A stretch of DNA of 64,000 nucleotides, taken from NCBI GenBank assembly GCA_002269645.1, contig NIVC01001003.1, positions 248,001 to 312,000 of the forward strand. The letters run 5' to 3'. The notes under the pieces were generated by a model. It was not told where the DNA came from. It searched no databases and worked only from the letters and a program-made list of their open reading frames with translations. Of this stretch, positions 27,500 through 56,621 are shown in pieces (position 1 is the stretch's first letter; each line of letters begins with the position of its first letter). The translations under genes and the position numbers were made by a program. This stretch comes from Macrostomum lignano (Eukaryota).

Positions 27500-28323
27500 A
27501 CGGTTCGGTTCTGATGGACGTGGAAAGAACAAGGACCCGACTGTCAGGACCCCAGCAAAAATTGAGATTGTTGCTCGTCTGATTGAGGACAGGCGCCTCA
27601 CTGTTAGGGAGCTCTCAGATAAATCTGGGATTCCCAAGACAACTATTCATGAGATTCTTGTCCATGACCTGCAGTCAAGCATGTGTCTGCCAGGTGGGTG
27701 CCTTACCTGCTCACGGAAGAAAACCGCAGGGAGTGCACACACTGTGCTCAGGACTTCTTTTGCATGAGCCGGGCTTTCAGCAGCAAATAATAACTGCTGA
27801 TGAAACATGGCTTTACTACGTGACTCCGGAAACCAAGAACCAATCTAAGCAGTGGGTGCCAATGGTTGCCAATGCCCCGACAAAGGCCCGGGTGTCCCGC
27901 AGTGCCGTGACTCACAGGGCCTTGCCTACACGTAGAGCAGGGCCAGACAGTCAACGCATACTTGACACTCTGAGGGACCACATTCGACGCAAGCGGCCAG
28001 AATGGATGGCAAGAACCAGGTTCACTGTTCTGCATGACAATGCCCGTCCACACACGTGTCAGCCCACACCAGGGAGTTTCTTACCAGGAGAGGCATTCCG
28101 GTGGTGCCGCATCCAACCTACTCACCTGATTTGGCCCCTGGCTGCGGACTTCTGGCTATTTCCGCATGTCAAAAACTGCATTGCCGGTTGCCGGTTCGAC
28201 ACCTTGCTGGAGCTTTTGACACCAACCCCATGGCTGCTTCCCAGTGCACTGAGGCCTTCAACAAGTGGCTGTTAGGGATGGCAGCGGTGCATTGAGAAGG
28301 ATGGAGATTATGTTGAAAAATGA
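27500..28323 (+). mobile_element. Decayed mariner (DD34D-type) transposase
   Basis: Pieces across several frames: LIEDRRLTVRELSDKSGIPKTTIHEIL, IITADETWLYYVTPETKNQSKQWV, LHDNARPH, PHPTYSPDLAP, DFWLFPH, and GDYVEK*. Multiple frameshifts; TIRs not identified. Confidence 0.88.
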
Positions 28324-29316
28324 CAGTTATTGTTTCGTTTCAATTGTTTGTTTAAAATCGTATATGGCACCTGCTGTCCTATATTTCGCCGGACAACCCT
28401 CTCCTGGTATTACAACATGATCGAGAGTAAGCAGGAAGTCCTGTACGACTTTGGGCCAGGGGCAGAAGCGATCTCGGCCCGAATACGCGGTCCCCAATTC
28501 CATCGCCGGCGCAGTCTCTCGATCGATCAGCCGATCCCGACGCTATCCCCGCAAATTTCTACATTAAAGATCTACAATTTCTACACGAACATGTGGAGCA
28601 TGTACATCTGCAGCGGGCTGCAGCGCTGCAGCCAGGTATTCCGCGTCCGACCGTCTCGACCTTAGCCTGCCACAGCCGGGCAGCGGTAACGTACATGTAC
28701 AACGTTACATGTACATACAACATACGCCGTACAGCTAGGCTGCATTGTACATGTACATAAATTAACATGTACATTTTGGGAATGTTTCTGAGGAGGACAT
28801 GTATATGCCCCCCGCGCCACCCGAAAAATTACAATATTTTTATATTGTACTTGAAGTAAATGTAGTTTCTACATGCATATTTTGACTAATATCGAATATT
28901 CGGTTCGATTTTAGAATATGTGCAGTATTAACTACCCAATTTCGGTGAAATATACGTTCGCAGAATAGAAACTTAGGTATCGTGAACATATCGTCCTAAC
29001 TTCTAATGCATTACTAAAAGTAGCAAATTTAGCGAATAATTACAATCAGATGAAGTCGCAACTCGTACTTACGCACTTTTTATAATACAAAAAGGCATTG
29101 GCTGACCAATTGCTATTTGGCAAGCATAGTACGCAGATTGGGTATCAAAGTATGAAAATGTTGTATCTAAATAAAATTCAGACAAGAACGGTACGATTGT
29201 GCCGCAGTCTTCCGTAGTGTCCACACAGTTTTGCTGCTGGGCAAGTCTCTCTGCGAGTGCGTTTTGATCTTCGCTGTGCTATAGAAGAGTGAAGAAGGTC
29301 TGCTGCTGCACCGAAT

Positions 29317-29436
29317 ATGCCGTTGGTATTACGTGTTGTTATGCCACTGTTGCTGTGTGCATTGTGCTCCGACTGCCTGCCGGCTAGCAACAGCATGTAC
29401 AGCCATCAGTCTGCGGACTGTGCCAGTGCCGACTTG
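29317..29436 (+). CDS. Candidate first exon encoding a signal-peptide-like N-terminus (possibly of the receptor-like gene)
   Basis: MPLVLRVVMPLLLCALCSDCLPASNS... followed by the good donor TTG|GTGAGA at 29436/7. Linkage to downstream exons not demonstrated. Confidence 0.3.
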
Positions 29437-29867
29437 GTGAGATGCTCGACATATTTTATCTATATTTGCGCGTATAAAACTATTCATGAAATTGGAAAAA
29501 ATGATCAGCTGGTTCTACCATAGATCCATAGATTTCACTGGTTACATACATGTAGTGTTTGAGGTTAAAGAGGTTAAAGCAATATGTTGGAAGATACACT
29601 CGTTAAAAGAGTGGATGGAGGCAGGGGCGGACCCAGGGGGGGGGGGAGCAAGGTGACCTCGGCCCCCCTCAGCCGTGGCCAAAAAATTAGCTCATGCTTT
29701 TTGGCCTGTAATTATACAAGGTCTCTTTTCTAATATTGATCCGAGGGCGATGGAAGATAGAGTGATATAAGGGTAAATGGATCATATTGAGGGCAGACAG
29801 TGGAGACAGAGGTGTCAATGGAGAATGGTACAACTGATATGAATGAATGAGTTATAAAGAGGATAGC

Positions 29868-30540
29868 ACTCCGTCACTCCGTCACTGCCTCACTCCGTCA
29901 CTGCCTCACTCTGTCACTGCCTCACTCCGTCACTGCCTCACTCCGTCACTGCCTCACTCCGTCACTGCCTCACTCCGTCACTGCCTCACTCCGTCACTGC
30001 CTCACTCCGTCACTGCCTCACTCCGTCACTGCCTCACTCCGTCACTGCCTCACTCCGTCACTGCCTCACTCCGTCACTGCCTCACTGCCTCACTGCCTCA
30101 CTCCGTCACTGCCTCACTCCGTCACTGCCTCACTCCGTCACTGCCTCACTCCGTCACTGCCTCACTCCGTCACTGCCTCACTCCCTCACTCCGTCACTGC
30201 CTCACTCCGTCACTGCCTCACTCCCTCACTCCGTCACTGCCTCACTCCGTCACTGCCTCACTCCGTCACTCCGTCACTCCCTCACTCCGTCACTGCCTCA
30301 CTCCGTCACTGCCTCACTCCGTCACTGCCTCACTCCGTCACTGCCTCACTCCGTCACTGCCTCACTCCGTCACTGCCTCACTCCGTCACTGCCTCACTCC
30401 CTCACTCCGTCACTGCCTCACTCCGTCACTGCCTCACTCCGTCACTGCCTCACTCCGTCACTCCCTCACTCCGTCACTGCCGTACTCCGTCACTGCCTCA
30501 CTCCGTCACTGCCTCATTCCCTCTCTCCGTCACTCCGTCC
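29868..30540. repeat. 16-bp minisatellite
   Basis: CTCCGTCACTGCCTCA units. Confidence 0.95.
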
Positions 30541-31454
30541 CTCAGTCATTCCGTCACTCCCCCAACCCGTCACTTCCTCACCCTGTCACTCAGTCACTCC
30601 TTCATTCCCGCAAACTGTCACTGCCGAATATTGCTATAGCAAGTCACAATCCCGAATGCAACTGCCCTGAGGCCTCGCATTGGTACTAAAAAAATATCCC
30701 AGAGCCGATTCTGGACTTCTCTGTTGGCGTACGAGGCTTAATTTTAATTGTCGTTACGCTAAAAACTTCGAAAATTACAGTTGTTAATTTAGCCTATCTT
30801 GATCTTTTTCTTTCGCTATATAAATTAGTTCGCTTCAATATACGCTCGTAGCAGTACAGTAGTCCTAGATGGTAGAAGCTTCATGCAGCTGTCATTCAAT
30901 CATCGTCATTATAGTGCAGCAACATGTCATGGTCGCTAAAAAGTTTATCTACAGTAGTTGACTACAAAATTTCGCTAGCAGAAAACAGCTCGCGATTCAA
31001 CTTAGTGGCTAAGCACTAAACACTGGGGGGAGGGGGGTTCGGTCTTGTGTTTCCCACGTTCGGGCGAGCTGTGCCTGACAAAGAAGGCATTTTATTCGGT
31101 ACAACAAACAAATGCATGTAAATGAAGACAAGGAACTGAGGAGGATATTTGGCGTCAGCCTGTCCCGCCGCCTCTCATCCCAGCAAAGATCCCAAGCAGA
31201 GATAGATTTCCCAATTGTCCCCACTCGCAACCAAGGGCTCCGGTTTTGTAGCTTCATGGACTGCTAATAAGGTACAATATGGATCGGAGGTCACTAGAGC
31301 AATTTTTGGGAACCATTCACAATGTATGAGTATTGAGTAAGTAAATAGGCAATGAATGGGATACTTTACAACATTATAAATTATGTTTAGTAAGTAACTT
31401 TCACAACCCATGGACAGATAGAAGCTTAAAAATGCAGAAATTTCTCAGATTAAA

Positions 31455-32050
31455 TAGTAGATTGTGTCGATGGTTTTGGAGACAGACAATGGTAGATTGT
31501 GTCCATGGTTTTGGAGACAGACAATGGTAGATTGTGTCTATGGTTTTGGAGTCAGACAATGGTAGATTGTGTCCATGGTTTTGGAGACAGACAATGGTAG
31601 ATTGTGTCTATGGTTTTGGAGTCAGACAATGGTAGATTGTGTCTATGGTTTTGGAGACAGACAATGGTAGATTGTGTCTATGGTTTTGGAGTCAGACAAT
31701 GGTAGATTGTGTCTATGGTTTTGGAGACAGACAATGGTAGATTGTGTCTATGGTTTTGGAGACAGACAATGGTAGATTGTGTCTATGGTTTTTGAGGCAG
31801 ACAATGGTAGATTGTGTCTATGGCTTTGGAGGCAGACAATGATAGATTATGTCTATGGTTTTTGAGGCAGACAATGGTAGATTGTGTCTATGGTTTTTGA
31901 GGCAGACAATGGTAGATTGTGTCTATGGTTTTTGAGGCAGACAATGGTAGATTGTGTCTATGGTTTTGGAGACAGACAATGGTAGATTGTGTCTATGGTT
32001 TTGGAGGCAGACAATGGTAGATTGTGTCTATGGTTTTTGAGGCAGACAAG
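31455..32050. repeat. 35-bp minisatellite
   Basis: GACAATGGTAGATTGTGTCTATGGTTTTGGAG(A/G/T)CA units. Confidence 0.95.
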
Positions 32051-32231
32051 GATTGATATTTCACGAGTAGAGAGAAGCCACTAATCTTGTCTATGACAAA
32101 ACCATATACACAAGCACATTGTCTCATGAATGTTGCGTTGAATAATGAGCGTAGATCCTAAGACAATGATCCATGCATGACAACATAAAATAAGTGATGA
32201 GTTGCTTTTTCTCAAAATTAAATACTAGTAG

Positions 32232-32412
32232 AATATCCACCTTTTTGTACCTGGTACATTGTTGACTGCTGCCTCCAGTCCAGATGCTTTGCGCCAGGAG
32301 TCCATGCTTCCTTTCCCACCGGACCGGATCCGGATATGACACTAATACTGCAGCAAAGCACACCCCATGTTAATATTTCATATATAGTAAGCGAAGCCCT
32401 CAAAGTCTGTCT
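32232..32412 (+). CDS. Candidate Cys-containing extracellular exon (weakly CUB-like)
   Basis: AG acceptor at 32231; reads (E)YPPFCTWYIVDCCLQSRCFAPG...ALKVC. The phase-2 GTAAGC donor at 32413 is compatible with the exon at 34681. Confidence 0.3.
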
Positions 32413-32709
32413 GTAAGCAGATTTTGAGACTAGACTGAGAATTAATATTTAAAGAAGAATTAGTGCGACTATTACATTAGAAAGGGGCCGGTGTGTCTGA
32501 ACCCCCCCATCTTGACAAGCATGACAAGACAAATTAACAACATGTAGTCATGCCAGTCCTAGAGCAGACAGGGTGGAAGCGAGAGCAGAATCTGAGAAAT
32601 GCTTAATACTCGCACAGTTTATATGACGGTTGTTAAACAGTGAGGCCGTAAAATGAGTAATTTTGTAGCGTAAAATCAATATCAAAATTTCATAAACTAT
32701 AAATTATCA

Positions 32710-33265
32710 CAAACCTGAAATATCACAGACCCGAAATATCACAAACCCGAAATATCACAAACCTGAAAAATCACGGACCTGAAATATCACAGACCTGAAA
32801 TATCACAAACCTGAAATATCACAAACCCAAAATATCACAAACCTGAAATATCACAAACCTGAAATATCACAAACCCGAAATATCACAAACCCGAAATATC
32901 ACAAACCTGAAATATCACGGACCTGAATATCACAGACCTGAAATATCACAGACCTGAAATATCACAGACCTGAAATATCACAAACCCGAAATATCACAAA
33001 CCCGAAATATCACGAACCCGAAATATCACAAACCCGAAATATCACAAACCCGAAATATCACAAACCCGAAATATCACAAACCTGAAACATCTCAAACCCG
33101 AAATATCACAAACCCGAAATATCACAAACCCGAAACATCTCAAACCCGAAACATCACAAACCTGAAATATCACAGACCTGAAATATCACAAACCTGAAAT
33201 ATCACAGACCTGAAATATCACAAACCCGAAATATCACAAACCCGAAACATCTCAAACCCGAAATG
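32710..33265. repeat. 16-bp minisatellite
   Basis: AAACC(C/T)GAAATATCAC units. Confidence 0.93.
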
Positions 33266-33934
33266 CGAGCTATCATAACTCCGAAAAGCAAAATACCGTT
33301 GGGTGTTGCTGGAACTTTCGGAGTTATTTCAGCAAAAGACTGAAAAAAACAGAGCGAAAACACTTATCAGCCACGTGTTGGTTGCATCGCAAGTTTTCTA
33401 TTCTGAAGCAACTACAATCTCTTTCTTGCACCCACATGCCACTGTCCCGGAAAAGATCGACAGTTATGGCGTGTTCTGCGCGTTATTTTGCATCACGTGC
33501 TCTAACTTAAAAGAAAGGTAAAAGTAAATTATGCTGCAGATTTTATGCTGCTGTTTAAACAACAGATCAAACTCCGGTGTAAACTACAGTTGACTCTTTA
33601 AGCACAGCACAGATTTCATCGATTAGATCTGCTCCTACACAAACCTCAGCAGCGAACGGAAATGAATTCACGACACATGCCCTAACCCCCAACCTTGCTC
33701 TCCTTCAGACCCAGCACGGGCTTGGCACAGTGTCCAGGCACGCGGAAATGTGCAGCGAAATGCCTGGTAAGCCAGCGCGATTTCAATAACATGATTTTTT
33801 GTATTGAGGGTCAAATTTGTTGAAGGGAAAGTGGCTGGGGGTAGCCAGCAGCAGCACTTCAATGCGTTAATCCAGGGTTTAAGCATCGGACTTTATCGAT
33901 AAGCTCGATCTAAAAGTAATCTAGGCAAGGGTCA

Positions 33935-34678
33935 GCACTCTCCACAGCCTCCCTGTACAACTGCTTAGAGCCAGCTGCTCAAATGCACTCTCCCACAGCC
34001 TCACTGTACAACTGCTCAGAGCCAGCTGCTCAAATGCACTCTCCCACAGCCTCCCTGTACAACTGCTCAGAGCCAGCTGCTCAAATGCACTCTCCCACAG
34101 CCTCCCTGTACAACTGCTCAGAGCCAGCTGCTCAAATGCACTCTCACACAGCCTCCCTGTACAACTGCTCAGAGCCAGCTGCTCAAATGCACTCTCCCAC
34201 AGCCTCCCTGTACAACTGCTCAGAGCCAGCTGCTCAAATGCACTCTCCCACAGCCTCCCTGTACAACTGCTCAGAGCCAGCTGCTCAAATGCACTCTCCC
34301 ACAGCCTCCCTGTACAACTGCTCAGAGCCAGCTGCTCAAATGCACTCTCCCACAGCCTCCCTGTACAACTGCTTAGAGCCAGCTGCTCAAATGCACTCTC
34401 CCACAGCCTCCCTGTACAACTGCTTAGAGCCAGCTGCTCAAATGCACTCTCCCACAGCCTCCCTGTACAACTGCTTAGAGCCAGCTGCTCAAATGCACTC
34501 TCCCACAGCCTCCCTGTACAACTGCTTAGAGCCAGCTGCTCAAATGCACTCTCCCACAGCCTCCCTGTACAACTGCTTAGAGCCAGCTGCTCAAATGCAC
34601 TCTCCCACAGCCTCCCTGTACAACTGCTTAGAGCCAGCTGCTCAAATGCACTCTCCCACAGCCTCCCTGTACAACTAC
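33935..34678. repeat. 51-bp tandem repeat, about 14.5 copies, stop-free in one frame
   Basis: CACTCTCCCACAGCCTCCCTGTACAACTGCT(C/T)AGAGCCAGCTGCTCAAATG; translates as MHSPTASLYNC(S/L)EPAAQ. Confidence 0.95.
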
Positions 34679-34680
34679 AG

Positions 34681-37148
34681 CGTGCAGACGGCTCAGTCAG
34701 CTGACAGCCTTCAGAGCACCGAGTTCTCAGACACTGCCAGCGGCCTCATTATCGGCTCCTTCGAGCTGGAGCACTGCCTGACTCCGTCAGACTCGCTGCT
34801 CATCGTTCTGGGCGAAGCCTCCGACTCGATGGGCGCCTCTGAGCACAGATGTCAGAGGCTGACCGTCTGCAACCAGATGGCCGACGGGAAGCGGCGACGA
34901 CTGCGGCTTCAACTGAGCCTCCGTCCGACCAGATCCTACACGATGAAGGTCTTCAAGCTGGCCAGCGGGTCCAGGCTGTGCGAGCAGCCCCGAGTTCGAT
35001 TCTTCTTCACCAGGTCGGCGGGCGACGACCGGCCGCTGGTGCAGCTGGCGGCGCGACGCTGCGGCGCCTGTGGTGACGATGGCAGCGACTTCCGCTGCAA
35101 CATGACGGCCTACCTGCGGAGCGGCTGGGTTGGTGGGCTGCTGCTAAAGCTGACCGGAGTTTTAGGCGATCAAAGTGACTGGATCAAATTTCCGGCCAAT
35201 CAGAGTCAGCGGGTGTCGGTGAGCTCACGGAGACCGTTTTGGGCGAGCAAACGGCGGGAGTAATGATTTAGTACGACTCACGTAGAATACTATAGCATTA
35301 AAATACTGTATTTTTTGCTTAAGGCAGCCTTCAAAGATTCTAAGAAACGAAATATTCTAGCCTTCTAAGATTTTCTAAGACACGTATGTTGCAGTCTTGA
35401 AAATTTTTATAAGAAAATAAATGTTGCAGTCTTGAAAGATTTTCTAAGAAACACAAATTCCAGTCTTGAAAGATTTTCTAAGAAACTAAATATTCCAGCT
35501 TTCAAATATTTTTTAAGAACGAAACGTTTTGACTCAAATGCAATTGTAAATTCAAACTAACTTTTTAAATTGCTGCAGAATTCAAACAGTTGGATTAAGG
35601 CAAACCTCTCCATGCAGATCCGAAGTTGGCAGCTCACCTATCATGTGAGTAATGTTTTTAATAATTTGTAACACAGCTGAGCATATTTCGTAGAACTCAG
35701 AGCCTTCCAATTTAATTTCAATCCAGTTTCGCAAAACTGCCGGATCGAGACGGACGATTTCCAGTGCAAGGCGAAGCATCTTTTCATTAGGATTCAATGG
35801 TAATCCACTCTGTGATTGACCTCATTGACACTGTGATTGACCTCACCGACACTCTGATTGACCTCACCGACACTCTGATTGACCTCACCGACACTCTGAT
35901 TGACCTCACCGACACTCTGATTGACCTCACCGACACTGTGATTGACCTCACCGACACCCTGTGATTGACCTCACCGACACTTTGATTGGCCTCACCGACA
36001 CCCTGTGATTGACCTCACCGACACTGTGATTGACCTCACCGACACCCTGTGATTGACCTCACCGACACTTTGATTGGCCTCACCGACGCTCTGATTGACC
36101 TCACCGACACTCTGATTGACCTCACCGACACTCTGATTGACCTCACCGACACTCTGATTGACCTCACCGACACTGTGATTGACCTCACCGACACTGTGAT
36201 TGACCTCACCGACACTTTGATTGACCTCACCGACACTGTGATTGGCCTCACCGACACTCTGATTGACCTCACCGACACTCTGATTGACCTCACCGACACT
36301 CTGATTGACCTCACCGACGCTCTGATTGGCCTCACCGACACTCTGTGATTGACCTCACCGACACTCTGATTGACCTCACCGACACTCTGATTGACCTCAC
36401 CGACACTCTGATTGACCTTAACGGTGATTGACCTCACCAACACTCTGTGATTGATCTCAATGACACTCCAAATTCCTCTGACTAATTATTTACAGACAAG
36501 TCGCTCCGCTCGCCGACCCTCTGTCAGCCCTCTGAGCCGCTGGCAGTCTGCCCGAGGCCGCTGTTGCCGCCGACAGTGGGCCAGTGGAGCGCGCCTTCGC
36601 CCTCCCAGTCGGCCAGAGGGTCTGTCAATCGATCAACAATCAGCGACACAGCGCCCGCAGTTTTAAGCTGGGCGCTTCCTCCGGCGCTAGTCCTGGCGCT
36701 CTTCCTGGCGCTCTACCGGGCGCTCTATGCTCAGCGCAATTGCGGCGATAGCAACACGAGAAAACTTGTCCTGCTAGTGCTTCCAGAAGCCGGAAATCCA
36801 ACGACCCGTCAGCTTATTCGCCGGCTGCCAGCGGCCCCGGCCGGAGTCGAGATACGTCAGGTGGTCGGCCTGAGCAAGCTCAACCGACAGCTAATTGGCA
36901 GCTCGTGCCTCGTCATCTTCCTGAGCTGGGACTCAAAGTTCGACAGCTTCCAAGCTGGCAGCCTGTCGGATGCAGCCGGGAGGAGTCTGAGAACGGTGCT
37001 GCTGACTGAGAAGCACCGGATGCTGGGAGCCTTCATCAACTCGGGAGCTGGACCGCCTGCTGACTCGATCTGGTCCGGCCTCGATGCCAGGATGCTGGGA
37101 CTGGACGATGGAGCGGCTTGGAAAGATCTGCTGCTCCAGGCTGCTTGA
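34681..37148 (+). CDS. Unassigned type I membrane protein: Cys-containing ectodomain, one TM helix, about 140-aa alpha/beta cytoplasmic domain (SEFIR/TIR-like)
   Basis: GC-rich open exons 34681-35218 and 36496-37148; small exons 35579-35644 and 35727-35799 give a phase-consistent chain (0, 0, 1). Hydrophobic VLSWALPPALVLALFLALY at about 36660-36716. No family match confirmed. Confidence 0.55.
35808..36450. repeat. 21-bp minisatellite in an intron of the receptor-like gene
   Basis: GATTGACCTCACCGACACTCT units. Confidence 0.95.
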
Positions 37149-37344
37149 GAACGGATGGTAGCTTTTGGTGGGTCTCAGGTTATTAGACGAGCGGGAATCG
37201 TTTTTAGAAATCATGGACCCGTGGGTTACGTTGCTCCCTAGCGTGTTTTAGCAACTTTAGATTTTTTTTATGGACTAAAAGTAAAATATTAAATATCTTC
37301 ATTTGGAAAATTCACGAGGTCCGACAAGCCAAATACGTCATGCC

Positions 37345-37710
37345 ATGTACACTGGGAATCGCCCATGTACACTAAGAATCGCCCATGTACATTGGGAATC
37401 GCCCATGTACATTGGGAATCGCCCATGTACATTGGGAATCGCCCCCCCACCGAATGACACTGTGGGAATCGCCTCCCCCCGATACACATTGGGAATCGCT
37501 CCAACCGATATACATTGAGAATCGCCCCCCCCTGCCCCGATATACATTGGGAATCGCCCCCCCCCGGCCCCCACCGATGTACATTGGGAATCGCCCCCCC
37601 CACCGATGTACATTGGGAATCGCCCCCCCACCGATGTACATTGGGAATCGCCCCCCCACCGATGTACATTGGGAATCGCCCCCCCCCACCGATGTACATT
37701 GGGAATCGCC
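37345..37710. repeat. Variable-length minisatellite (about 21-30 bp)
   Basis: TACATTGGGAATCGCCC(C)n(ACCG)ATG units with variable C runs. Confidence 0.88.
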
Positions 37711-38279
37711 CCCCCCCCATTTACGCCTCTGCCTCCTTGTCCAAACGGTGGCCTCAATTCGCCATTGATGTCAACCCCTCCAATTAAATTTCAGATCAAG
37801 CTTGAAAAGTTTGGCAAACTTTTGTGCGGTCAACTGATCCCGCGATCACTCACTGATGTACAAAGTTGACACCTGCAGCTATCATTATAAAAGTTCATAC
37901 GCATCGAGTTAAGATTTAGGTCAGGAGGCAAAGAACATTCATTAGTCAATTTCTGTGTTCAATTCCTATTTTGAAAAGCCATTATTATTTCATAGTTTAT
38001 TAGTCTGTCATTTTACGCGTATTTTCGAATTGATTTCGCCAAATACTCTACTAGTAGTCACTGTACGTTCAGTGCCAAAATGTTATTGAGAAGAAATTTG
38101 TAAATAAATTGAAATAAATTTTTTAATGCTTGATTTTTGTCCCTTGTTGAAGTTTGGGCAATGCAATAATAAAATACAATGATTATTTATTTAAATTATA
38201 CGCTTGTAAATACTTGCTGTAAATCTGCAATAATGACCTCTAGGTACTTACAGTTTGACACCCAGTTACTTTATGGCTC

Positions 38280-38480
38280 ACTCTGACACCCGGTTAGTGT
38301 ACTTTTATAGTTTACTCTGACACCCGGTTAGTGTACTTTTATAGTTCACTCGGACACCCGGTTAGTGTACTTTTATAGTTCACTCGGACACCCGGTTAGT
38401 GTACTTTTATAGTTCACTCGGACACCCGGTTAGTGTACTTTTATAGTTCACTCTGACATCCGGTTAGTGTACTTTTATAG
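38280..38480. repeat. 34-bp minisatellite, about 6 copies
   Basis: ACTC(T/G)GACACCCGGTTAGTGTACTTTTATAGTTC units. Confidence 0.92.
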
Positions 38481-39655
38481 TTCACTCCGGACACCGGTTA
38501 ATGCAGTATTATTGTGTGTCTCACTCCAAAACCAGTTATTATAACAATAATTATAACATATGAGGCTATACTTCAAGTCATGGTAGTATTGACCTAATCA
38601 GCGAAGGTGCAAATTAGGACCCAAAATAGTTCTTTTTAATTGTTCTGCACTTTAATCAGGGACAACTGATGCAGGACGCTTCCGTACATGTATTTCTTCA
38701 GAGCATATAGTATAGCCCATGTACGTGCATACTCGTACATGTATAGACAAACCTAAGGTCAGTGTTTTAGAGTCGCAAAAATTGAGTTATTTCGCTGCTA
38801 TGCTTCTGCTTTTCATACATGTGGATCTAATTTGTTTCAGATCTTTAGCGGAAATCGCACCCCAACACGTGTATTCTGTTGTGTATTAAAAGGATTGACT
38901 GGAAAGTAAAACGGCCCTTTTCAGGGCCACCTTAAGCCACAGATACTAGAGTACACTAAGTAGATGAGCCACTCAGGCAAAAAATAAGCCTTCTGTTTAA
39001 TAAAGGCAGCTGAAATGACTTTGAGTTCAGAAGCCCAAGCTTGCAGGCGTAAACAGCTTGCTAATTGGTTCAGCCATGATCTACATTAGCCAGTCCAACT
39101 GAAATGTACATGGCAGCTTTAGGCTGGAATTCCGAGAAAGGCAATAAAAATTGGGACGGGCAGGGGTTAGTGAGGAAAGGCGCGGTTGGAGGGTTTAAGC
39201 TACGCTGCTACGGGTAAGAGTCAATTAATGAGCTTTTGGTGTTAAAAATACATTAAAATCCTTCTGTTTAACGTACTACTGAACTGAAAGTAGCTTGCAC
39301 GCAAATGTGCTGAGTGGCCCTAATCTATTTTATTCTAGTACATTATCTGTGCCCTAAACGAACATAGCGGTTGAGGCTAAAAAGAGTGGGGGCACAAAAT
39401 ATGCGAAATATGGAGAACACGATGATGCGGTTCTGAATGCTACACTCGTAAAAAAACCGCGCGGAGTAAGAATATCAATCTCTCTGTTCCTACAGTGCCC
39501 GTCTGGCACCAACCAGCGTAAACAGCCCTAGGCTTGCTCTTTCTTTTGAGTCGTTTCCTTCGTGCAACAGATCATACTCTTCCAGTTTAACCAGAAGTAT
39601 AAAGCCGCAGACCAATAAGTATAACAATGAGTAAGCACATTCAACAACTTTCAAT

Positions 39656-40174
39656 CAAGGACGACTTAAGTAGGACAGGAAACCTCGTTTCTTAGAAAAT
39701 TTTAGAAGGCAGGTTTTTCCGAAAAAATACACTACGGAGATAGGAAGTTTTCATTTTTTTCAGCACAAAAAAATTGCTATTGCTTTTGATATGAGGCAGA
39801 TCCAGTGTTCATCTTTGTTTGTTTGTTACAGAGTCAGCTAAGAATGACAAAATAACATCATAAAGTTAAAGAGCAGACCTGTGCCATCTCAATAGTTTTC
39901 AGGCACAAGACACGCGCAAATGTATGTAGAATAAAAAATTCACATAGCATCCTAATTTTCTGAACGAGAAGCTTATTGAATATCGATAGAGCAATAAGAA
40001 AGACACAACATAGCAAAAGATGAACACTGGATCTGCTTCCTATCAAAAGCAAAAGCAATTTTTGTGCTGAAAGAATGAAAACTTCCTATCTCCGTAGTGT
40101 ATTTTTTCGGGAAAGCCGGCCTTCTAAATTTTTCTAAGAAATGAGGTTTTTTTGTCCTCCTAAGACTGGCAAAT
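39656..40174. mobile_element. Second copy of the CAAGGAC palindromic TIR element family
   Basis: Starts CAAGGACGACTTAAGTAGGAC; about 135-bp arms at about 39680-39815 and 40019-40150 are inverted; 39960-40130 is homologous to 9405-9580. Right end and TSD are degenerate. Confidence 0.7.
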
Positions 40175-40239
40175 CTCTCAATTAGATGCATTTTTACAGT
40201 GCCGGATGATTTTAAGACTGGTCCAGTTCCATTTAATTC

Positions 40240-40560
40240 TAAACTGTCAGCTTCCACTGCTTCTGTGCTGAGTCAGCTGATGATGGTAGGCATGACAAGG
40301 ACAGTTGAATGGTGGCATCCTGCTGCTTCAGATTCGGATTGACAGACTGGAGAATCCCTCCTCCGGCATGCACCAGCAGCTGCCTAAATGCTGAGCGAAA
40401 CTTACGAGTATTGCCCAGTCTGAGTCCGTGGCTTTCCTGTACTTGCTGCAACATACACACATATTTACATTCTTCTGTTCGGCCACACAAATGTTCCCAG
40501 GGACTGCCACTGCATGGTTTCGAATCAGCTTCAACATGTGCGACACATCCAAGAAGGCTG
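40240..40560 (-). mobile_element. Degenerate P-element/THAP9-type transposase fragment
   Basis: DVSHMLKLIRNH resembles the D.PHL.K..RN motif, and RKFRSAFRQLLVH resembles the C-terminal QF..A.R.LL motif of P-type transposases. The two pieces are in different frames with a large gap missing. Confidence 0.5.
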
Positions 40561-41689
40561 AAACCTGAATGCCAGGATCTCAGCGCTATCAGTCACTTTT
40601 TTCTCATTACTTTAATTGTCCGTTGGAAAAGTCTGGAAGGACTCCGGGATTCCGGATACAGCGGGAGGCGTCGCGTCGCCGCTAAGTAAGGAGGGACACT
40701 CCCGCCACCACCAGCGGCATCGCTGCATTGTTTGAACAGCCAAACAGCACAGCAAAAGCTGTCATGACTTCCTCTTCTTTTCCCGGCAATTTAGAAGATT
40801 CAGATTGTTATTTCATTTCATTTAAGTAATTATATTTCCAATAACTTTGCTTGTCACTTAAAAACTAGTATAGCATTGCTATTTTGGTCTCTAGTGCCAC
40901 TTTAATGTAGATGTTAATTTAAATAAGGGCAGACAGCTAAAGAAGGGCCAGGGCCAGTCTTCCCCAGGCCACTGATATCGATCGTTTTGGGATGGAGTAG
41001 AGGGGACCATTTTTTGCTTGGTCATTTTTTACAAAAAAAACAGCCCCAGGCAAAGCAATGCTGGATGCGCAGTTTAGTTATACTTATTGTTCTGAGGCTG
41101 GCGCTGCCCTGCAACATCATTTCGAGAAGAACATTTCTTGGAAATAAACCCAACTACACTAAAAAAATTATTCACTGCGCCATAGCAGCGTACACTGAAC
41201 CACGGCCGGAGACAGTAAATGATTGTACATTTGCATGTACACACCGGACAGAAATGTATACGTACATCGAACCATTCATTTCTATAGTTTACTAGTTTAC
41301 TGGCCAATTAGAGTTAATAATTAATTATAGCCGACAATTGGTTGAGGTCAGCATAAAATAACATACATATATTAGAAACCAAAACTTAATTATTACAAGC
41401 CTCTCGATAATTATCTCTTGATAAGCAATCCTCGTTTCTCAGTAAGTTCCAGTTAACAAATTAAAACGAAAAGATTTTGCTCTTCGAAATGAGGCGAGCG
41501 CGAAAGCAAGCCAAGAGAAAATCTGCCAATTCTTCTGGCAAGACTTCGTCTCAATCTCCATCATCGCTGCAGCTAGTGAGTTCCATTGTATATGATATCC
41601 ACTTGTACGATTTCCTGAAATTTTCCTAAAAATTACATGTAATATGTAATATGGGTCACTTTTCCACCCTTTGACACTCTTACCCATCA

Positions 41690-42785
41690 TCTACCACCTC
41701 TTCCCACCCCCTCTCCCACTCTTTTCTCACCCCCTCTCCCACTCTTTTCCCACCCTCTCTCCTACTCTTTCCCACCCTCTCTCCTACTCTTTTCCCACCC
41801 TCTCTCCCACTCTTTTCCCATCCTCTCCCACTCTTTTCCCACCCTCTCTCCCGCTCTTTTCCCACCCTCTCTTCTACTCTTTTCCCACCCTCTCTCCCAC
41901 TCTTTTCCCACCCTCTCTCCCGCTCTTTTCCCACCCTCTCTTCTACTCTTTTCCCACCCTCTCTCCCACTCTTTTCCCACCCTCTCTCCCGCTCTTTTCC
42001 CACCCTCTCTTCTACTCTTTTCCCACCCTCTCTCCCACTCTTTTCCCACCCTCTCTCCCGCTCTTTTCCCACCCTCTCTTCTACTCTTTTCCCACCCTCT
42101 CTCCCACTCTTTTCCCACCCTCTCTCCCGCTCTTTTCCCACCCTCTCTTCTACTCTTTTCCCACCCTCTCTCCCACTCTTTTCCCACCCTCTCTCCCGCT
42201 CTTTTCCCACCCTCTCTCCCGCTCTTTTCCCACCCTCTCTCCCGCTCTTTTCCCACCCTCTCTCACACTCTTTTCCCACCCTCTCTCCTACTCTTTTCCC
42301 ACCCTCTCTCCCACTCTTTTCCCACCCTCTCTCCCGCTCTTTTCCCACCCTCTCTTCTACTCTTTTCCCACCCTCTCTCCCACTCTTTTCCCACCCTCTC
42401 TCCCGCTCTTTTCCCACCCTCTCTCCTACTCTTTTCCCACCCTCTCTCCTACTCTTTTCCCACCCTCTCTCCTACTCTTTTCCCACCCTCGCTCCCACTC
42501 TTTTTCCCACCCTCTCTTCTACTCTTTTCCCACCCTCTCTCCCACTCTTTTCCCACCCTCTCTCCCGCTCTTTTCCCACCCTCTCTTCTACTCTTTTCCC
42601 ACCCTCTCTCCCACTCTTTTCCCACCCTCTCTCCCGCTCTTTTCCCACCCTCTCTCCCGCTCTTTTCCCACCCTCTCTCCCGCTCTTTTCCCACCCTCTC
42701 TCACACTCTTTTCCCACCCTCGCTCCCACTCTTTTTCCCACCTTCTAAAACTCTTTTCCCACCCTCTCCCACTCTTTTCCCACTT
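41690..42785. repeat. 1.1-kb polypyrimidine minisatellite (22-bp core)
   Basis: CTCTCTCCC(A/G)CTCTTTTCCCACC units; source of the proline-rich and GKERE ORF artefacts. Confidence 0.93.
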
Positions 42786-42901
42786 TTTCCGTTCCTCTAA
42801 GTAATTCAAGACTTGCCAATTTTTTTAAAGTTGAAGCATTTATTTCAGTGTTATTTCTTTTACTACAGGCGGAGACGACCGCTGCGCCACCTTCGAGCGA
42901 C

Positions 42902-47484
<4,583 letters not shown>

Positions 47485-47629
47485 ATGCCCTTAATGATGA
47501 GAGCGGAACAGAAAATACTGATCAAGGAGGCGAACGGAGTTGAAAAGTAAATTACAAAGAATAAAAATATCTGAGGAGACACGGACTTGAGACTGAGAGA
47601 GGAAAGACGACAGCGACAGAAGACGCGTA

Positions 47630-50600
47630 TGCAGACAAGGATGAGTGAGGCAGAAGCGGACACAAAGCGAGTGGACACAAACGGGCAAAGAGTGAGGCAG
47701 AAGCGGACACAAGCGGTCAAGGAGTGAGGCAGAAGCGGACACAAACGGGCAAGGAGTGAGGCAGAAGCGGACACAAACGGTCAAGGAGTGAGGCACAAGC
47801 GGACACAAACGGGCAAGGAAGAGTGAGGCAGAAGCGGACACAAACGGGCAAGGACGAGTGAGGCAGAAGCGGACACAAACGGTCAAGGAGTGAGGCAGAA
47901 GCGGACACAAACGGGCAAGGAAGAGTGAGGCAGAAGCGGACACAAGCGGTCAAGGAGTGAGGCAGAAGCGGACACAAACGGGCAAGGAGTGAGGCAGAAG
48001 CGGACACAAACGGTCAAGGAGTGAGGCACAAGCGGACACAAACGGGCAAGGAGTGAGGCACAAGCGGACACAAACGGGCAAGGAGTGAGGCAGAAGCGGA
48101 CACAAACGGTCAAGGAGTGAGGCAGAAGCGGACACAAACGGGCAAGGAGTGAGGCACAAGCGGACACAAACGGGCAAGGAGTGAGGCACAAGCGGACACA
48201 AACGGGCAAGGAGTGAGGCAGAAGCGGACACAAACGGTCAAGGAGTGAGGCACAAGCGGACACAAACGGGCAAGGAAGAGTGAGGCAGAAGCGGACACAA
48301 ACGGGCAAGGACGAGTGAGGCAGAAGCGGACACAAACGGTCAAGGAGTGAGGCAGAATCGGACACAAACGGGCAAGGAAGAGTGAGGCAGAAGCGGACAC
48401 AAACGGGCAAGGAGTGAGGCACAAGCGGACACAAACGGGCAAGGAGTGAGGCACAAGCGGACACAAACGGGCAAGGAGTGAGGCAGAAGCGGACACAAAC
48501 GGTCAAGGAGTGAGGCACAAGCGGACACAAACGGGCAAGGAGTGAGGCAGAAGCGGACACAAACGGTCAAGGAGTGAGGCACAAGCGGACACAAACGGGC
48601 AAGGAAGAGTGAGGCAGAAGCGGACACAAACGGGCAAGGACGAGTGAGGCAGAAGCGGACACAAACGGTCAAGGAGTGAGGCAGAAGCGGACACAAACGG
48701 GCAAGGAAGAGTGAGGCAGAAGCGGACACAAGCGGTCAAGGAGTGAGGCAGAAGCGGACACAAACGGGCAAGGAGTGAGGCAGAAGCGGACACAAACGGT
48801 CAAGGAGTGAGGCACAAGCGGACACAAACGGGCAAGTAGTGAGGCACAAGCGGACACAAACGGGCAAGGAGTGAGGCAGAAGCGGACACAAACGGTCAAG
48901 GAGTGAGGCAGAAGCGGACACAAACGGGCAAGGAGTGAGGCACAAGCGGACACAAACGGGCAAGGAGTGAGGCACAAGCGGACACAAACGGGCAAGGAGT
49001 GAGGCAGAAGCGGACACAAACGGTCAAGGAGTGAGGCACAAGCGGACACAAACGGGCAAGGAAGAGTGAGGCAGAAGCGGACACAAACGGGCAAGGACGA
49101 GTGAGGCAGAAGCGGACACAAACGGTCAAGGAGTGAGGCAGAATCGGACACAAACGGGCAAGGAAGAGTGAGGCAGAAGCGGACACAAACGGGCAAGGAG
49201 TGAGGCACAAGCGGACACAAACGGGCAAGGAGTGAGGCACAAGCGGACACAAACGGGCAAGGAGTGAGGCAGAAGCGGACACAAACGGTCAAGGAGTGAG
49301 GCACAAGCGGACACAAACGGGCAAGGAAGAGTGAGGCAGAAGCGGACACAAACGGTCAAGGAGTGAGGCACAAGCGGACACAAACGGGCAAGGAAGAGTG
49401 AGGCAGAAGCGGACACAAACGGGCAAGGAAAAGTGAGGCAGAAGCGGACACAAACGGGCAAGGAAGAGTGAGGCAGAAGCGGACACAAACGGGCAAGGAA
49501 GAGTGAGGCAGAAGCGGACACAAACGGTCAAGGAGTGAGGCAGAAGCGGACACAAACGGTCAAGGAGTGAGGCAGAAGCGGACACAAACGGTCAAGGAGT
49601 GAGGCAGAAGCGGACACAAACGGTCAAGGAGTGAGGCAGAAGCGGACACAAACGGGCAAGGAGTGAGGCAGAAGCGGACACAAACGGTCAAGGAGTGAGG
49701 CACAAGCGGACACAAACGGGCAAGGAGTGAGGCACAAGCGGACACAAACGGGCAAGGAGTGAGGCAGAAGCGGACACAAACGGTCAAGGAGTGAGGCAGA
49801 AGCGGACACAAACGGGCAAGGAGTGAGGCACAAGCGGACACAAACGGGCAAGGAGTGAGGCACAAGCGGACACAAACGGGCAAGGAGTGAGGCAGAAGCG
49901 GACACAAACGGTCAAGGAGTGAGGCACAAGCGGACACAAACGGGCAAGGAAGAGTGAGGCAGAAGCGGACACAAACGGGCAAGGACGAGTGAGGCAGAAG
50001 CGGACACAAACGGTCAAGGAGTGAGGCAGAATCGGACACAAACGGGCAAGGAAGAGTGAGGCAGAAGCGGACACAAACGGGCAAGGAGTGAGGCACAAGC
50101 GGACACAAACGGGCAAGGAGTGAGGCACAAGCGGACACAAACGGGCAAGGAGTGAGGCAGAAGCGGACACAAACGGTCAAGGAGTGAGGCACAAGCGGAC
50201 ACAAACGGGCAAGGAGTGAGGCACAAGCGGACACAAACGGGCAAGGAGTGAGGCACAAGCGGACACAAACGGGCAAGGAAGAGTGAGGCAGAAGCGGACA
50301 CAAACGGGCAAGGAAAAGTGAGGCAGAAGCGGACACAAACGGGCAAGGAAGAGTGAGGCAGAAGCGGACACAAACGGGCAAGGAAGAGTGAGGCAGAAGC
50401 GGACACAAACGGTCAAGGAGTGAGGCAGAAGCGGACACAAACGGTCAAGGAGTGAGGCAGAAGCGGACACAAACGGTCAAGGAGTGAGGCAGAAGCGGAC
50501 ACAAACGGTCAAGGAGTGAGGCAGAAGCGGACACAAACGGTCAAGGAGTGAGGCAGAAGCGGACACAAACGGTCAAGGAGTGAGGCAGAAGCGGACACAA

Positions 50601-50697
50601 ACTGGCAAGGAGTGAGGCAGAAGCGGACACAAACTGGCAAGGAGTGAGGCAGAAGCGGACACAAACGGGCAAGGAGTGACGCAGAAGCGGACACAAC
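47630..50697. repeat. 3-kb satellite, 32-35-bp units with higher-order periodicity
   Basis: GAGTGAGGCA(G/C)AAGCGGACACAAACGG(G/T)CAAG units; all the SASASLL..RLCP ORFs derive from it. Confidence 0.97.
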
Positions 50698-51127
50698 ACA
50701 TCGAAATTTTCAAAGAAATCGACACTCAAATCGGCAAAAATTCCGCCACGGAGCAGCGGAGCATGGCAAAAAAATAACAAAGAACACTTGCTCTCCTACC
50801 GAAAATATTTTAATTGTATTGTTTTATATCAAACCAAATATATATTATACACTTAACGAATGCTGTGATGTAAAAAAACAAAATACTTTTATATTTTTTA
50901 TTTAAAGTTAAAAAGAACGTTACGGCGACAGTTCTCTATTTATGACAGTATAAATGAGTCAAATGACAGCTAGTGTGAGTGACAGCTATAATGTCCGTGT
51001 ATTGATAGCATCGCTAAAATAACGTGCAAGCCCATAAAGGTGTAAGACGTAATCATCATTCATACGTTAGCTTTTAGTTATGTTTAATAGCTGTCTACGA
51101 CAGGCGATTGAATAAGGAGAAAAGACT

Positions 51128-55900: not shown

Positions 55901-56621
55901 CTGTCTTGAAGGCGGCAGAGTGCTTGGCTATGACGTCATTGATAACGGGTACAACGTTGGCACCATCCTCTTTGGCTGGATAGACTTTCAAAGCGAGGCT
56001 ACCCGTGATGAAGTCGTTCTGCACGTCAACAATCACCATGGCAACTGGGCCGGAGAAAATCACGCTCAGCCAGGGCAGAGCGCGAGCCGCCATGTCCGAG
56101 GGCGACACGAGGCCGTCCTGGAGAAGAGGAGCACTTTACTGCAGTCACCTGACCCCACCAATGGAATCAAAGGGTGTCACCTGACCCCACCAATGGAATC
56201 CCAGGGTGTCACCTGACCCCACCAATGGAATCCCAGGGTGTTACCTGACCCCACCAATGAAATCCCAAAGTGTATCATATGCTAAAAAAATTCTTAGCAT
56301 TTCAAGACCATACCAACCTTGTCCTTGTCCAAGAAGGCATAGATTTTATCCAGCTCAGCTGCACTCAGTGAACCACTGGTTGCAATGGACTCAACCAAAT
56401 TTTTTACCTCTGCTTTGTCTAATGCATTATCTCTAAAATAGATAAATTTTTTGAGACAATCAGAATAATTTATTTAAAACTGAAGTGCAAATTAAACATA
56501 TATGTTAAACAAAAATCATAACTTACTTGTTTGCATCAAATGTCTGAAAGATCCTTTTTATATCAGCTTCTGTGATATCCTTGCCAGGATATTGGTTAAA
56601 AAACTTGCTATTGCCAAACAT
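52922..56621 (-). CDS. PNC1: Nicotinamidase (PNC1/Naam; isochorismatase family) with an N-terminal EF-hand; at least 5 exons
   Basis: Exons 56627(ATG 56621)-56527, 56117-55815, 55369-55232, 53692-53381 and 53014-52922. Motifs IVDVQNDFITGSL, SLDWHPADHISF, MWPRHCVQNSSGAELH, VYKGTDPDIDSYSAFWDN and VCGLATDVCVGSTA. The last three junctions are phase 0; the first junction is 1 nt out of phase. Confidence 0.93.
53095..53370. repeat. 21-bp minisatellite in the last nicotinamidase intron
   Basis: GATCAGCATGAGCAATGAC(T/C)A units. Confidence 0.92.
53725..55212. repeat. 1.5-kb 20-bp minisatellite in a nicotinamidase intron
   Basis: CAGTTCCAAACAGACACAGT units with periodic CTTAGGTCTAAACAGACACATTTCC insertions. 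Confidence 0.95.
55430..55765. repeat. About 23-25-bp minisatellite in a nicotinamidase intron
   Basis: GA(C/T)ACTGAGACAAGATA core with variable linker. Confidence 0.88.
56144..56260. repeat. 32-bp repeat, about 3.5 copies, in the first nicotinamidase intron
   Basis: GTCACCTGACCCCACCAATGGAATC(C/A)(C/A)AGGGT units. Confidence 0.85.

Follow-up and report, generated by a model that had tools for sequence, protein, structure and literature searches.

Gene structure

The 64-kb stretch of the Macrostomum lignano genome analysed here, referred to as the window, contains a gene on the forward strand, the core of which is a chain of four exons (34662–35218, 35579–35644, 35727–35799 and 36496–37148) that keeps the reading frame and uses canonical GT..AG splice sites. 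Exon 1 (34662–35218) is the main ectodomain exon (ASLYNYSVQT...QSQRVS; donor gtgagc) and contributes 7 of the 11 ectodomain cysteines. The 66 nt exon 2 encodes NSNSWIKANLSMQIRSWQLTYH, and the 73 nt exon 3 encodes FRKTAGSRRTISSARRSIFSLGFN together with the first base of the next codon. The last exon, exon 4, includes a Pro/Ser stalk, a TM helix and a cytoplasmic tail, and ends with a TGA stop codon at 37146–37148.

The same four exons are present in PAA52225.1 (GenBank), a 458 aa protein from a 98% identical copy of the gene in a syntenic M. lignano contig of assembly GCA_002269645.1. PAA52225.1 was deposited as a hypothetical protein (BOX15_Mlig029866g3), and the M. lignano annotation behind it was built from RNA-seq and transcriptome assemblies only (PMC5730564). 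Comparison with this transcript-derived annotation revealed that the exon chain proposed in an initial annotation of the window was essentially right. The extent given there, 34681–37148, is correct at its end but not at its start, as exon 1 begins at 34662 (cacag/CCTCC), in the last unit of a 51-bp minisatellite. This intronic minisatellite (33935–34676) consists of 14.6 copies with 98% identity, and its final unit is the source of the exon 1 acceptor and of the first 15 nt of the exon (34662–34676). As one unit equals 17 codons, the exon frame runs open through the minisatellite. A 21-bp minisatellite (35813–36418; 28.5 copies) occupies most of the last intron.

While the core exons stood, the 5′ part of the gene was incomplete in the initial annotation. 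An upstream exon at 33709–33766, preceded by the acceptor cttcag, encodes TQHGLGTVSRHAEMCSEMP and includes the ATG at 33748 that is the start of PAA52225.1. Further upstream, a probable first coding exon at 29317–29436 encodes MPLVLRVVMPLLLCALCSDCLPASNSMYSHQSADCASADL, which has a signal-peptide-like N-terminus. Its donor, gtgaga, is in phase 0 and is an exact phase match to the 33709 exon. The 29317–29436 exon is included in an ab initio UniProt model, here P0002, and is identical in the M. lignano locus L001; it is not in PAA52225.1. The gene would thus extend from 29317 or 33709 to 37148 and comprise five or six exons, with minisatellite-stuffed introns between them.

Several other exon joins were considered and set aside. 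A direct join of exon 1 to exon 4 from a donor at 35174 (AAA/gtgact) is conceivable on paper, and another, via an acceptor at 36528, is used by the ab initio model A0A1I8IVD9; neither is used by PAA52225.1. A join running directly from the signal-peptide exon to 34688 was given up in favour of the chain found in P0002, which runs from 29436 through 33709–33766 to 34662. The frame of exon 3 that is better in composition (SQNCRIETDDFQCKAKHLFIRIQ) leads to a stop codon when joined to exon 4, and PAA52225.1 uses the other frame.

Predicted protein and its topology

The full product is 508 aa long and consists of a signal peptide, an ectodomain of ~320 aa, a Pro/Ser stalk, a single TM helix and a tail of 139 aa. 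A Kyte–Doolittle analysis found only two hydrophobic segments, residues 1–23 (the signal peptide) and 346–369. The latter corresponds to AVLSWALPPALVLALFLALYRALY (36657–36728), most of which is derived from a 12-bp tandem repeat at 36671–36726; as the sole hydrophobic segment besides the signal peptide, it confirms the single TM helix of the initial annotation, and the Pro/Ser-rich stretch described there is also present. The five NxS/T sequons all precede the TM helix, as do 11 of the 13 cysteines of the mature chain, and K/R residues are found on the C-terminal flank of the helix. The features of a type I protein are therefore in place, with the signal-peptide exon found in the ab initio model and not in PAA52225.1, and judged from these sequence features an N-out/C-in topology would fit. 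The ectodomain had been described as Cys-bearing and beta-rich. The 11 cysteines N-terminal to the TM helix bear out the first property, and the AlphaFold2 model of the ectodomain is all-beta, with a pLDDT of 37.2.

The signal-peptide exon is missing from the transcript-derived model, and SL trans-splicing at 33709 may apply. The M. lignano SL sequence and its acceptor motif, YTNCAG, have been described (PMC8629364), and the cttcag acceptor of the 33709–33766 exon fits this motif. The SL ends in ATG (PMC8629364), which we infer would be in frame with the 33709–33766 exon. An mRNA trans-spliced at 33709 would begin as PAA52225.1 does and exclude the 29317–29436 exon, and no signal peptide would therefore be left. 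The segments called ectodomain and tail here could then be reversed, and the protein could be a signal-anchor protein (type II or type III), or could have a cytosolic N-terminal domain. We regard such an mRNA as unlikely, and the same holds for these forms of the protein. The positive-inside rule speaks for a C-terminus in the cytoplasm, the five sequons are all N-terminal to the TM helix, and the 29317–29436 exon has a textbook signal-peptide shape as well as exact phase compatibility.

Provided that the 29317–29436 exon is used, the product of the preferred, type I arrangement would thus carry a signal peptide, followed by a putatively beta-rich ectodomain with cysteines and N-glycosylation sequons, the Pro/Ser stalk, and a TM helix flanked by positive charges on its C-terminal side. 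The pattern of hydrophobic runs and amphipathic segments in the tail suggests a small alpha/beta module.

Coding signal, gene copies and orphan status

In the frame claimed for them, exon 1 and the portion of exon 4 that encodes the tail show a coding-like choice of codons, with GC3 values of 0.77 and 0.67, respectively, and the in-frame coding score of exon 1 is +0.18. Exons 2 and 3 showed no coding-like composition of their own in the codon-composition test. The composition of exon 3 favours another frame, but only the frame that is used splices through.

The M. lignano genome is partly duplicated, and near-identical gene copies are expected (PMC5730564). Three copies of the gene have kept an intact frame and every splice site, and the equivalent of exon 2 (35579–35644) has been deleted from tandem copy 1 of locus L001. 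No paralogue was found when the 64-kb window was searched with the gene model using tblastn. Two copies that were compared differ by 6 synonymous and 8 non-synonymous changes and one in-frame 9-bp indel. Five of the eight amino acid differences are in the C-terminal third of the tail. At 0.45, the pN/pS ratio does not fall significantly under 1 (binomial P=0.11, two copies).

When 1.84 billion representative proteins were searched, the only match was the gene's own cluster, in agreement with the orphan status claimed initially. A search for homologous proteins with the exon 4 product alone returned nothing, and missed PAA52225.1 as well. There were no matches to phage records (tblastn), to NCBIfam or to PADLOC, which includes many TIR and SEFIR defence models, and no Pfam match of any kind, including FN3 and IL17_R_N, was found in the ectodomain at E≤10. 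The literature searched contained no mention of Mlig029866, and the gene identifier was absent from the supplements examined of M. lignano expression papers. With transcript-backed exons, one TM helix and no homologue beyond its own cluster, the description of an orphan single-pass receptor-like protein holds. The gene resembles other M. lignano orphan genes in being transcribed, annotated as hypothetical and present in near-identical duplicates, and in having neither a Pfam domain nor, in the collections searched, a homologue from any other species. However, it differs from many orphans in its coherent architecture of signal peptide, ectodomain, TM helix and tail, which suggests a defined cellular location.

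These observations also bear on whether the open reading frame is young. A de novo and poorly constrained transcribed ORF, perhaps partly repeat-derived, would have neither a stable fold nor a conserved function, and its receptor-like appearance would be an accident of composition. The single cluster match, the 12-bp repeat that encodes the TM helix, the minisatellite unit that supplies the 5′ end of exon 1, the composition of exons 2 and 3, the pN/pS value, the loss of exon 2 from one L001 tandem copy and the failure of AlphaFold2 to predict anything confidently are all consistent with this origin. We nonetheless consider it improbable. In both large exons, codon usage and GC3 give a clear signal in the right frame, and frame and splice sites have been retained in three copies. 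The sequons, cysteines and signal peptide are on one side of the TM helix and the basic residues on the other, and low AlphaFold2 confidence is expected with any single-sequence input. We conclude that this is probably a genuine, transcribed, lineage-restricted M. lignano gene for a 508-aa single-pass membrane protein, for which a STIR-type tail is tentative.

Deposited models and their names

Two ab initio models that include this gene have been given domain names in UniProt. P0002 is named 'Cadherin domain-containing', and begins with ~225 aa of unrelated sequence from antisense and intergenic ORFs, which may explain the name. No match to the cadherin repeat (PF00028 and relatives) was found at E≤10 in P0002, PAA52225.1 or the ectodomain in the window. 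The second, A0A1I8IVD9, is an artificial two-copy fusion model that contains only the sequence of this gene, twice, and was automatically named 'SEFIR domain-containing protein'. This automatic name is the sole independent pointer to SEFIR. PAA52225.1 has the same tail as the gene studied here and does not have the SEFIR name, being listed as 'Uncharacterized' in UniProt. The match behind the A0A1I8IVD9 name is therefore probably borderline, and we infer that it is a profile match (PROSITE PS51534) that needs the artificial read-through extension.

The cytoplasmic tail

The tail (139 aa, 36729–37145) is a candidate alpha/beta module, possibly SEFIR/TIR-like, with the pattern RKLVLLVLPE ... GVEIRQVV ... 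CLVIFLSW ... RTVLLTE ... ARMLGL ... AAWKDLLLQ. The alternation of strands and helices noted initially is present and is weakly non-random, as two hydrophobic runs of at least 5 residues occur in 3% of shuffles. The order and spacing of the strands had also been likened to SEFIR domains. The strand spacing is 27, 20, 28 and 33 residues in the tail and 30, 33, 57 and 24 residues in the IL-17RA/IL-17RB SEFIRs, and only the first interval matches.

When the tail, the tail with its read-through, the whole model, PAA52225.1, P0002 and A0A1I8IVD9 were searched with the Pfam SEFIR (PF08357) and TIR (PF01582, PF13676) models, no matches were returned at E≤10, noting that HMMER filters hide matches with E above ~0.1 and very weak similarity could escape. 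The positive controls, the SEFIRs of IL-17RA and ACT1, scored 148 and 135 bits, respectively, and the ACT1 SEFIR also reached TIR_2 at 25.6 bits. A custom HMM made from 31 IL-17RA, IL-17RB and ACT1 SEFIRs gave the tail -2.4 bits, a score equalled by 27% of shuffles, and one made from 30 IL-17RA and IL-17RB sequences gave -2.5 bits, equalled by 41% of shuffles. Alignment of the tail with SEFIR using hhalign had a probability of 0.07–0.09%, and Smith–Waterman comparison with three solved SEFIRs (IL-17RA, 4NUX; IL-17RB, 3VBC/9OT1; ACT1, 9OT1) gave z values of -1.43 to 0.65. No SEFIR or TIR match was found in the PDB using phmmer at E≤10. Thus, the SEFIR/TIR-like tail of the initial annotation found no support in Pfam, custom HMM, hhalign, Smith–Waterman or PDB searches.

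Structure prediction was of limited use here. AlphaFold2, run on the tail as a single sequence without homologues, gave a mean pLDDT of 36.7, with every residue below 50, because there were no homologues for an alignment. A Foldseek search of the PDB with this model returned nothing at E≤0.001 and TM-scores of at most 0.25, values that are meaningless at such confidence.

Comparison with IL-17 and TIR receptors

The layout of the protein is that of the IL-17 receptors (PF08357/PS51534; IL-17RA–RE and SEF/IL-17RD), namely a type I single-pass protein with a beta-rich, cysteine-containing ectodomain and a cytoplasmic module that starts a few residues past the TM helix. A 10-residue linker separates the TM helix from the first strand, the whole succession being much like that of IL-17RB, and the first strand, KLVLLVLPE, resembles KVLVVYPSE there, a hydrophobic strand followed by Pro and acidic residues. 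The CLVIFLS strand resembles KVVFLLS, and KLVLLVLPE and CLVIFLS are similar to the SEFIR strands betaA and betaC. However, neither PF08357 nor the solved SEFIRs of IL-17RA, IL-17RB and ACT1 showed any sequence similarity to the tail that was statistically detectable. From the first strand to the C-terminus the tail is 128 aa, while a SEFIR is ~150 aa; the invariant alphaB Trp and alphaC DLF of IL-17RA/IL-17RB have no counterpart, and the alphaB and CC'/alphaC segments are 13–30 residues too short. The ectodomain also differs from those of IL-17 receptors in having no double-FN3 signature.

A true but highly divergent SEFIR would make the protein a flatworm member of the IL-17 receptor family that recruits an adaptor by SEFIR–SEFIR contact. 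The name of A0A1I8IVD9 and the IL-17RB-like succession of signal peptide, ectodomain, TM helix, linker and first strand, together with the betaA- and betaC-like strands, point in this direction. Degeneration of SEFIR and double FN3 is also common among invertebrate IL-17Rs: in many of them these domains have degenerated too far for domain models to recognize, and FN3 is degenerate beyond detection in about half (PMC11087794). Against this, PF08357 was silent while its controls scored strongly, the custom HMM, hhalign and Smith–Waterman results were all at the level of shuffles or background, the alphaB and alphaC features are missing or too short, the ectodomain matches neither FN3 nor IL17_R_N, and PAA52225.1, with the same tail, is uncharacterized. 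We therefore consider a divergent SEFIR possible but doubtful.

The TLR/IL-1R family (TIR, PF01582/PF13676) has the same receptor layout, with a juxtamembrane (beta-alpha)5-type module, and the strand spacing of the tail is closer to that of a generic TIR/flavodoxin-like fold than to SEFIR. However, there is no Pfam TIR match, none of box 1, the BB-loop and box 3 (FW) is recognizable in the tail, and neither LRR nor Ig domains are present in the ectodomain.

Returning to the lineage-restricted membrane protein, its most likely action would be that of a cell-surface receptor or adhesion-type protein, the ectodomain of which would bind an extracellular partner while the tail would recruit cytoplasmic partners. 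None of the family, fold and homologue searches lent support to a specific function. The best named candidate for the tail, put forward tentatively, is a homotypic interaction domain of the STIR type (SEFIR/TIR-like) in a minimal and degenerate form, and the remaining probability belongs to an unrelated or novel fold.

Implications

The protein is already known as a deposited hypothetical, and a SEFIR-like tail is possible but doubtful. If the tail is not a SEFIR, the gene is one more taxonomically restricted membrane protein, of local interest only, in a genome with many unassigned genes. SEFIR was not found paired with Macrostomum, Platyhelminthes or planarian in the literature searched, and the IL-17 evolution literature searched did not cover Platyhelminthes. 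It is conceivable, though unlikely, that this is the first IL-17-receptor-like (STIR-superfamily) receptor to be recognized in a flatworm; its tail would then be, with equally low likelihood, a stripped-down SEFIR of ~128 aa without the alphaB and CC' elements, combined with a lineage-specific ectodomain. RNAi is possible in M. lignano. As transgenesis also exists for this species (PMC5730564), the part that the gene plays in regeneration or immunity can be tested directly. If the IL-17-receptor-like reading is true, the gene would show how far a SEFIR can degenerate while the receptor architecture is kept, would define a minimal SEFIR, and would provide a candidate cytokine or wound-signal receptor for a regenerating model organism. 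A real SEFIR in this tail would place IL-17-type signalling in the Platyhelminthes.

Structure and transcription of the candidate gene

The candidate gene is a spliced, transcribed and lineage-restricted gene on the + strand. Four segments can be joined in frame via canonical splice sites: exon 1 (34662-35218; acceptor cacag/CCTCC, donor gtgagc), the small exons 2 (35579-35644; acceptor ctgcag, donor gtgagt) and 3 (35727-35799; acceptor atccag, donor gtaatc), and the last exon, exon 4 (36496-37148; acceptor tttacag), which ends in TGA. The identical four-exon chain is found in GenBank entry PAA52225.1, which is 98% identical to the window product. As the Mlig_3_7 GenBank annotation was built solely from RNA-seq and transcriptome assemblies, with ORFs called by TransDecoder (PMC5730564), transcript support, on which the initial annotation had made its reading depend, exists at least for the sister copy. 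The exon chain proposed there was essentially recovered, with a correction of the start at 34681, which lies 19 nt inside exon 1. Coding-type codon usage was seen in exon 1 and the tail part of exon 4, in the claimed frame only (GC3 of 0.77 and 0.67, respectively; 0.73 in the known genes of the window), and was not seen in exons 2 and 3.

The exon 1 acceptor sits in the last unit of a 51 bp minisatellite (33935-34676). The 14.6 units, each of 17 codons, are open in the exon 1 frame, and the acceptor used, cccacag/cctccctg, recurs in every one. Splicing to an upstream unit would insert in-frame 17 aa repeats (ASLYNCSEPAAQMHSPT) into the ectodomain.

Two exons have been placed further upstream. 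The first (29317-29436, + strand; MPLVLRVVMPLLLCALCSDCLPASNS...) resembles a signal peptide. It is part of the ab initio UniProt model A0A1I8H6B0 and has no transcript backing, and its signal-peptide likeness was also spotted independently in the window sequence. The second (33709-33766, + strand; TQHGLGTVSRHAEMCSEMP) provides the GenBank model with its ATG. The cttcag acceptor of this exon, at 33709, agrees with YTNCAG, the acceptor motif of the M. lignano spliced leader, whose last three bases are ATG (PMC8629364). Thus, a trans-spliced isoform that has no signal peptide and a different topology is possible; we consider it fairly unlikely, and it would be compatible with either of the alternatives discussed below.

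Genomic context and sister locus

The window sequence is eukaryotic; its exons are rich in GC, and its introns are rich in AT and packed with minisatellites. PAA52225.1, annotated as 'hypothetical protein BOX15_Mlig029866g3 [Macrostomum lignano]', is encoded by a sister locus, L001, on contig NIVC01003280.1 of assembly GCA_002269645.1. Window positions 27712-46419 are collinear with L001 at 92-99% identity, which indicates that the window represents this M. lignano locus in a further copy, haplotype or assembly. L001:5686-13741 (window equivalent 32685-37715) contains the gene twice in tandem, compared with once in the window, and the two copies are virtually identical (one mismatch over 2.1 kb and none over 1.15 kb). 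Their junction precedes the CDS end by 14 nt (window-equivalent ~37134 joined to ~33320), and copy 1 has lost exon 2 to a deletion of ~400 bp. This arrangement could reflect duplication in the very recent past, or an artefact of assembly.

The surrounding genes include a PIF1-family helicase gene (1135-4554, + strand; PF05970, 1.9e-43, and a Pif1 2B domain), with an intronic minisatellite (3433-4035) that reads as an open ORF on the opposite strand, and an Abl-interactor homologue of 420 aa, apparently in a single exon (11771-13033, - strand; Pfam Abi_HHR and a C-terminal SH3). An L7/L30-type ribosomal-protein-like gene (14029-16075, - strand; weak PF00327 match) adjoins long minisatellite ORFs of the MSDELG/MSDKLLAD type, and an isochorismatase/nicotinamidase-family gene identified by Pfam (53363-56108, - strand) is interrupted by an intron filled with repeats. 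Downstream of the candidate gene, L001 has a CCCH zinc-finger gene. ORFs at 27583-28275 and 43667-44311 (both + strand) resemble decayed mariner/Tc1-type transposase fragments by eye; no Pfam match at E<=0.001 was returned for the two segments scanned, 27583-28275 and 43746-44222. A minisatellite block of several kb (46000-51000), in which the strands are extremely asymmetric (in 2 kb windows, AT skew reaches 0.80 and GC skew 0.32), is the source of many long spurious - strand ORFs.

Orphan status and database models

When 1.84 billion cluster representatives were queried using phmmer without filters, the sole match was PAA52225.1, and a search of 90% clusters returned only this entry and UniProt A0A1I8IVD9, which bears out the orphan status claimed earlier. 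No paralogue was found in the window. A word-indexed homology search with the 217 aa exon 4 product missed the 98% identical PAA52225.1, probably because low-complexity words saturated the candidate list, and the full-length query found it. Negatives obtained with short queries in such searches need caution.

Both A0A1I8H6B0 and A0A1I8IVD9 are ab initio predictions by WormBase/UniProt for this locus. ORF sequence at 28330-28665 and antisense to the ribosomal-protein-like gene (14324-14725) has wrongly been built into the former, and the latter (871 aa) fuses two tandem copies by read-through.

Protein architecture

The only hydrophobic segments in the full 508 aa model are residues 1-23 and 346-369. 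The mature N-terminal part contains five NxS/T sequons and 11 Cys, the stalk is rich in Pro and Ser, and R/K residues flank the TM helix C-terminally. The receptor-like architecture in the initial annotation, with ectodomain, stalk and single TM helix, is therefore real, and the features of the predicted product are those of an N-out/C-in orientation. A caveat is that the TM helix (ALPPALVLALFLALYRALY) is encoded by a 12 bp tandem repeat (GGCGCTCTTCCT x 4.7; 36671-36726), and so may have originated by microsatellite-like expansion.

Tests for a SEFIR or TIR domain

A SEFIR/TIR-like fold had been proposed for the 139 aa tail (36729-37145), but it was not demonstrated. At E<=10, Pfam returned no SEFIR or TIR match in the tail, the whole model, the three database proteins, or the A0A1I8IVD9 tail with its read-through extension, while the control SEFIR domains of IL-17RA (checked against PDB 4NUX) and ACT1 (checked against 9OT1) scored 148 and 135 bits on PF08357. 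Nothing relevant came from PADLOC, NCBIfam or phmmer against the complete set of PDB sequences. HMMs drawn from a set of 37 IL-17RA and IL-17RB SEFIR fragments were built without and with ACT1. When every HMMER filter was switched off, the tail scored -2.5 and -2.4 bits on them, values equalled by 41% and 27% of composition-matched shuffles, respectively. The hhalign probability was 0.07-0.09%, with IGSSCLVIFLSW against VESNSKIIVLCS the sole pairing, and Smith-Waterman z scores against IL-17RA, IL-17RB (human and mouse) and ACT1 were -1.43 to 0.65. The IL-17RA/IL-17RB invariant residues (alphaB Trp, alphaC DLF) have no counterpart in the tail, and strand spacing (27, 20, 28, 33, versus 30, 33, 57, 24 in SEFIR) agrees only at the first interval. 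The pattern of hydrophobic runs is weakly non-random (P=0.03). AlphaFold2 without an alignment gave pLDDT values of 36.7 (tail) and 37.2 (ectodomain), and Foldseek with this low-confidence tail model returned noise.

The sole independent pointer to SEFIR is the automatic UniProt name of A0A1I8IVD9, 'SEFIR domain-containing protein', presumably derived from the PROSITE SEFIR profile. This protein consists of the candidate gene twice and nothing else, and has no Pfam match. As PAA52225.1, with the identical native tail, is named 'Uncharacterized protein', and A0A1I8H6B0, with a truncated tail, 'Cadherin domain-containing protein', the match seems to require the artificial read-through at the C-terminus (...DLLLELFEQKTEKNRAK...), which suggests a borderline score. 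In invertebrate IL-17Rs, many of the SEFIR and FN3 domains go undetected by domain models (PMC11087794), and the architecture of the candidate protein is compatible with IL-17R. For these reasons we retain a real SEFIR receptor, the strongest version of our main reading, as a tentative possibility.

Constraint between copies

A comparison of the window with L001 copy 2 shows no change at any splice site and no break in the frame, with a single 9 bp in-frame indel in the juxtamembrane linker. There are six synonymous and eight non-synonymous differences (pN/pS 0.45). The ratio does not differ significantly from the neutral value (binomial P=0.11), and the numbers are too small to conclude on. 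Of the eight replacements, five fall in the final third of the tail and none in its first 83 residues, which hold the betaA-to-betaC-like part. A young, poorly constrained ORF without a defined function, as the pN/pS value would allow, appears improbable.

Implications

The gene was already on deposit as a hypothetical protein, one model already bears the automatic SEFIR label, and a literature search found no paper discussing it. We favour a cell-surface protein whose ectodomain would bind a partner outside the cell and whose compact tail would recruit partners in the cytoplasm, with STIR-type homotypic contacts the best named candidate for recruitment. In the M. lignano genome, where genes with recognised homologues are a minority (PMC5730564), it would be at worst one more orphan membrane protein and at best a new, divergent member of a type of receptor already known.
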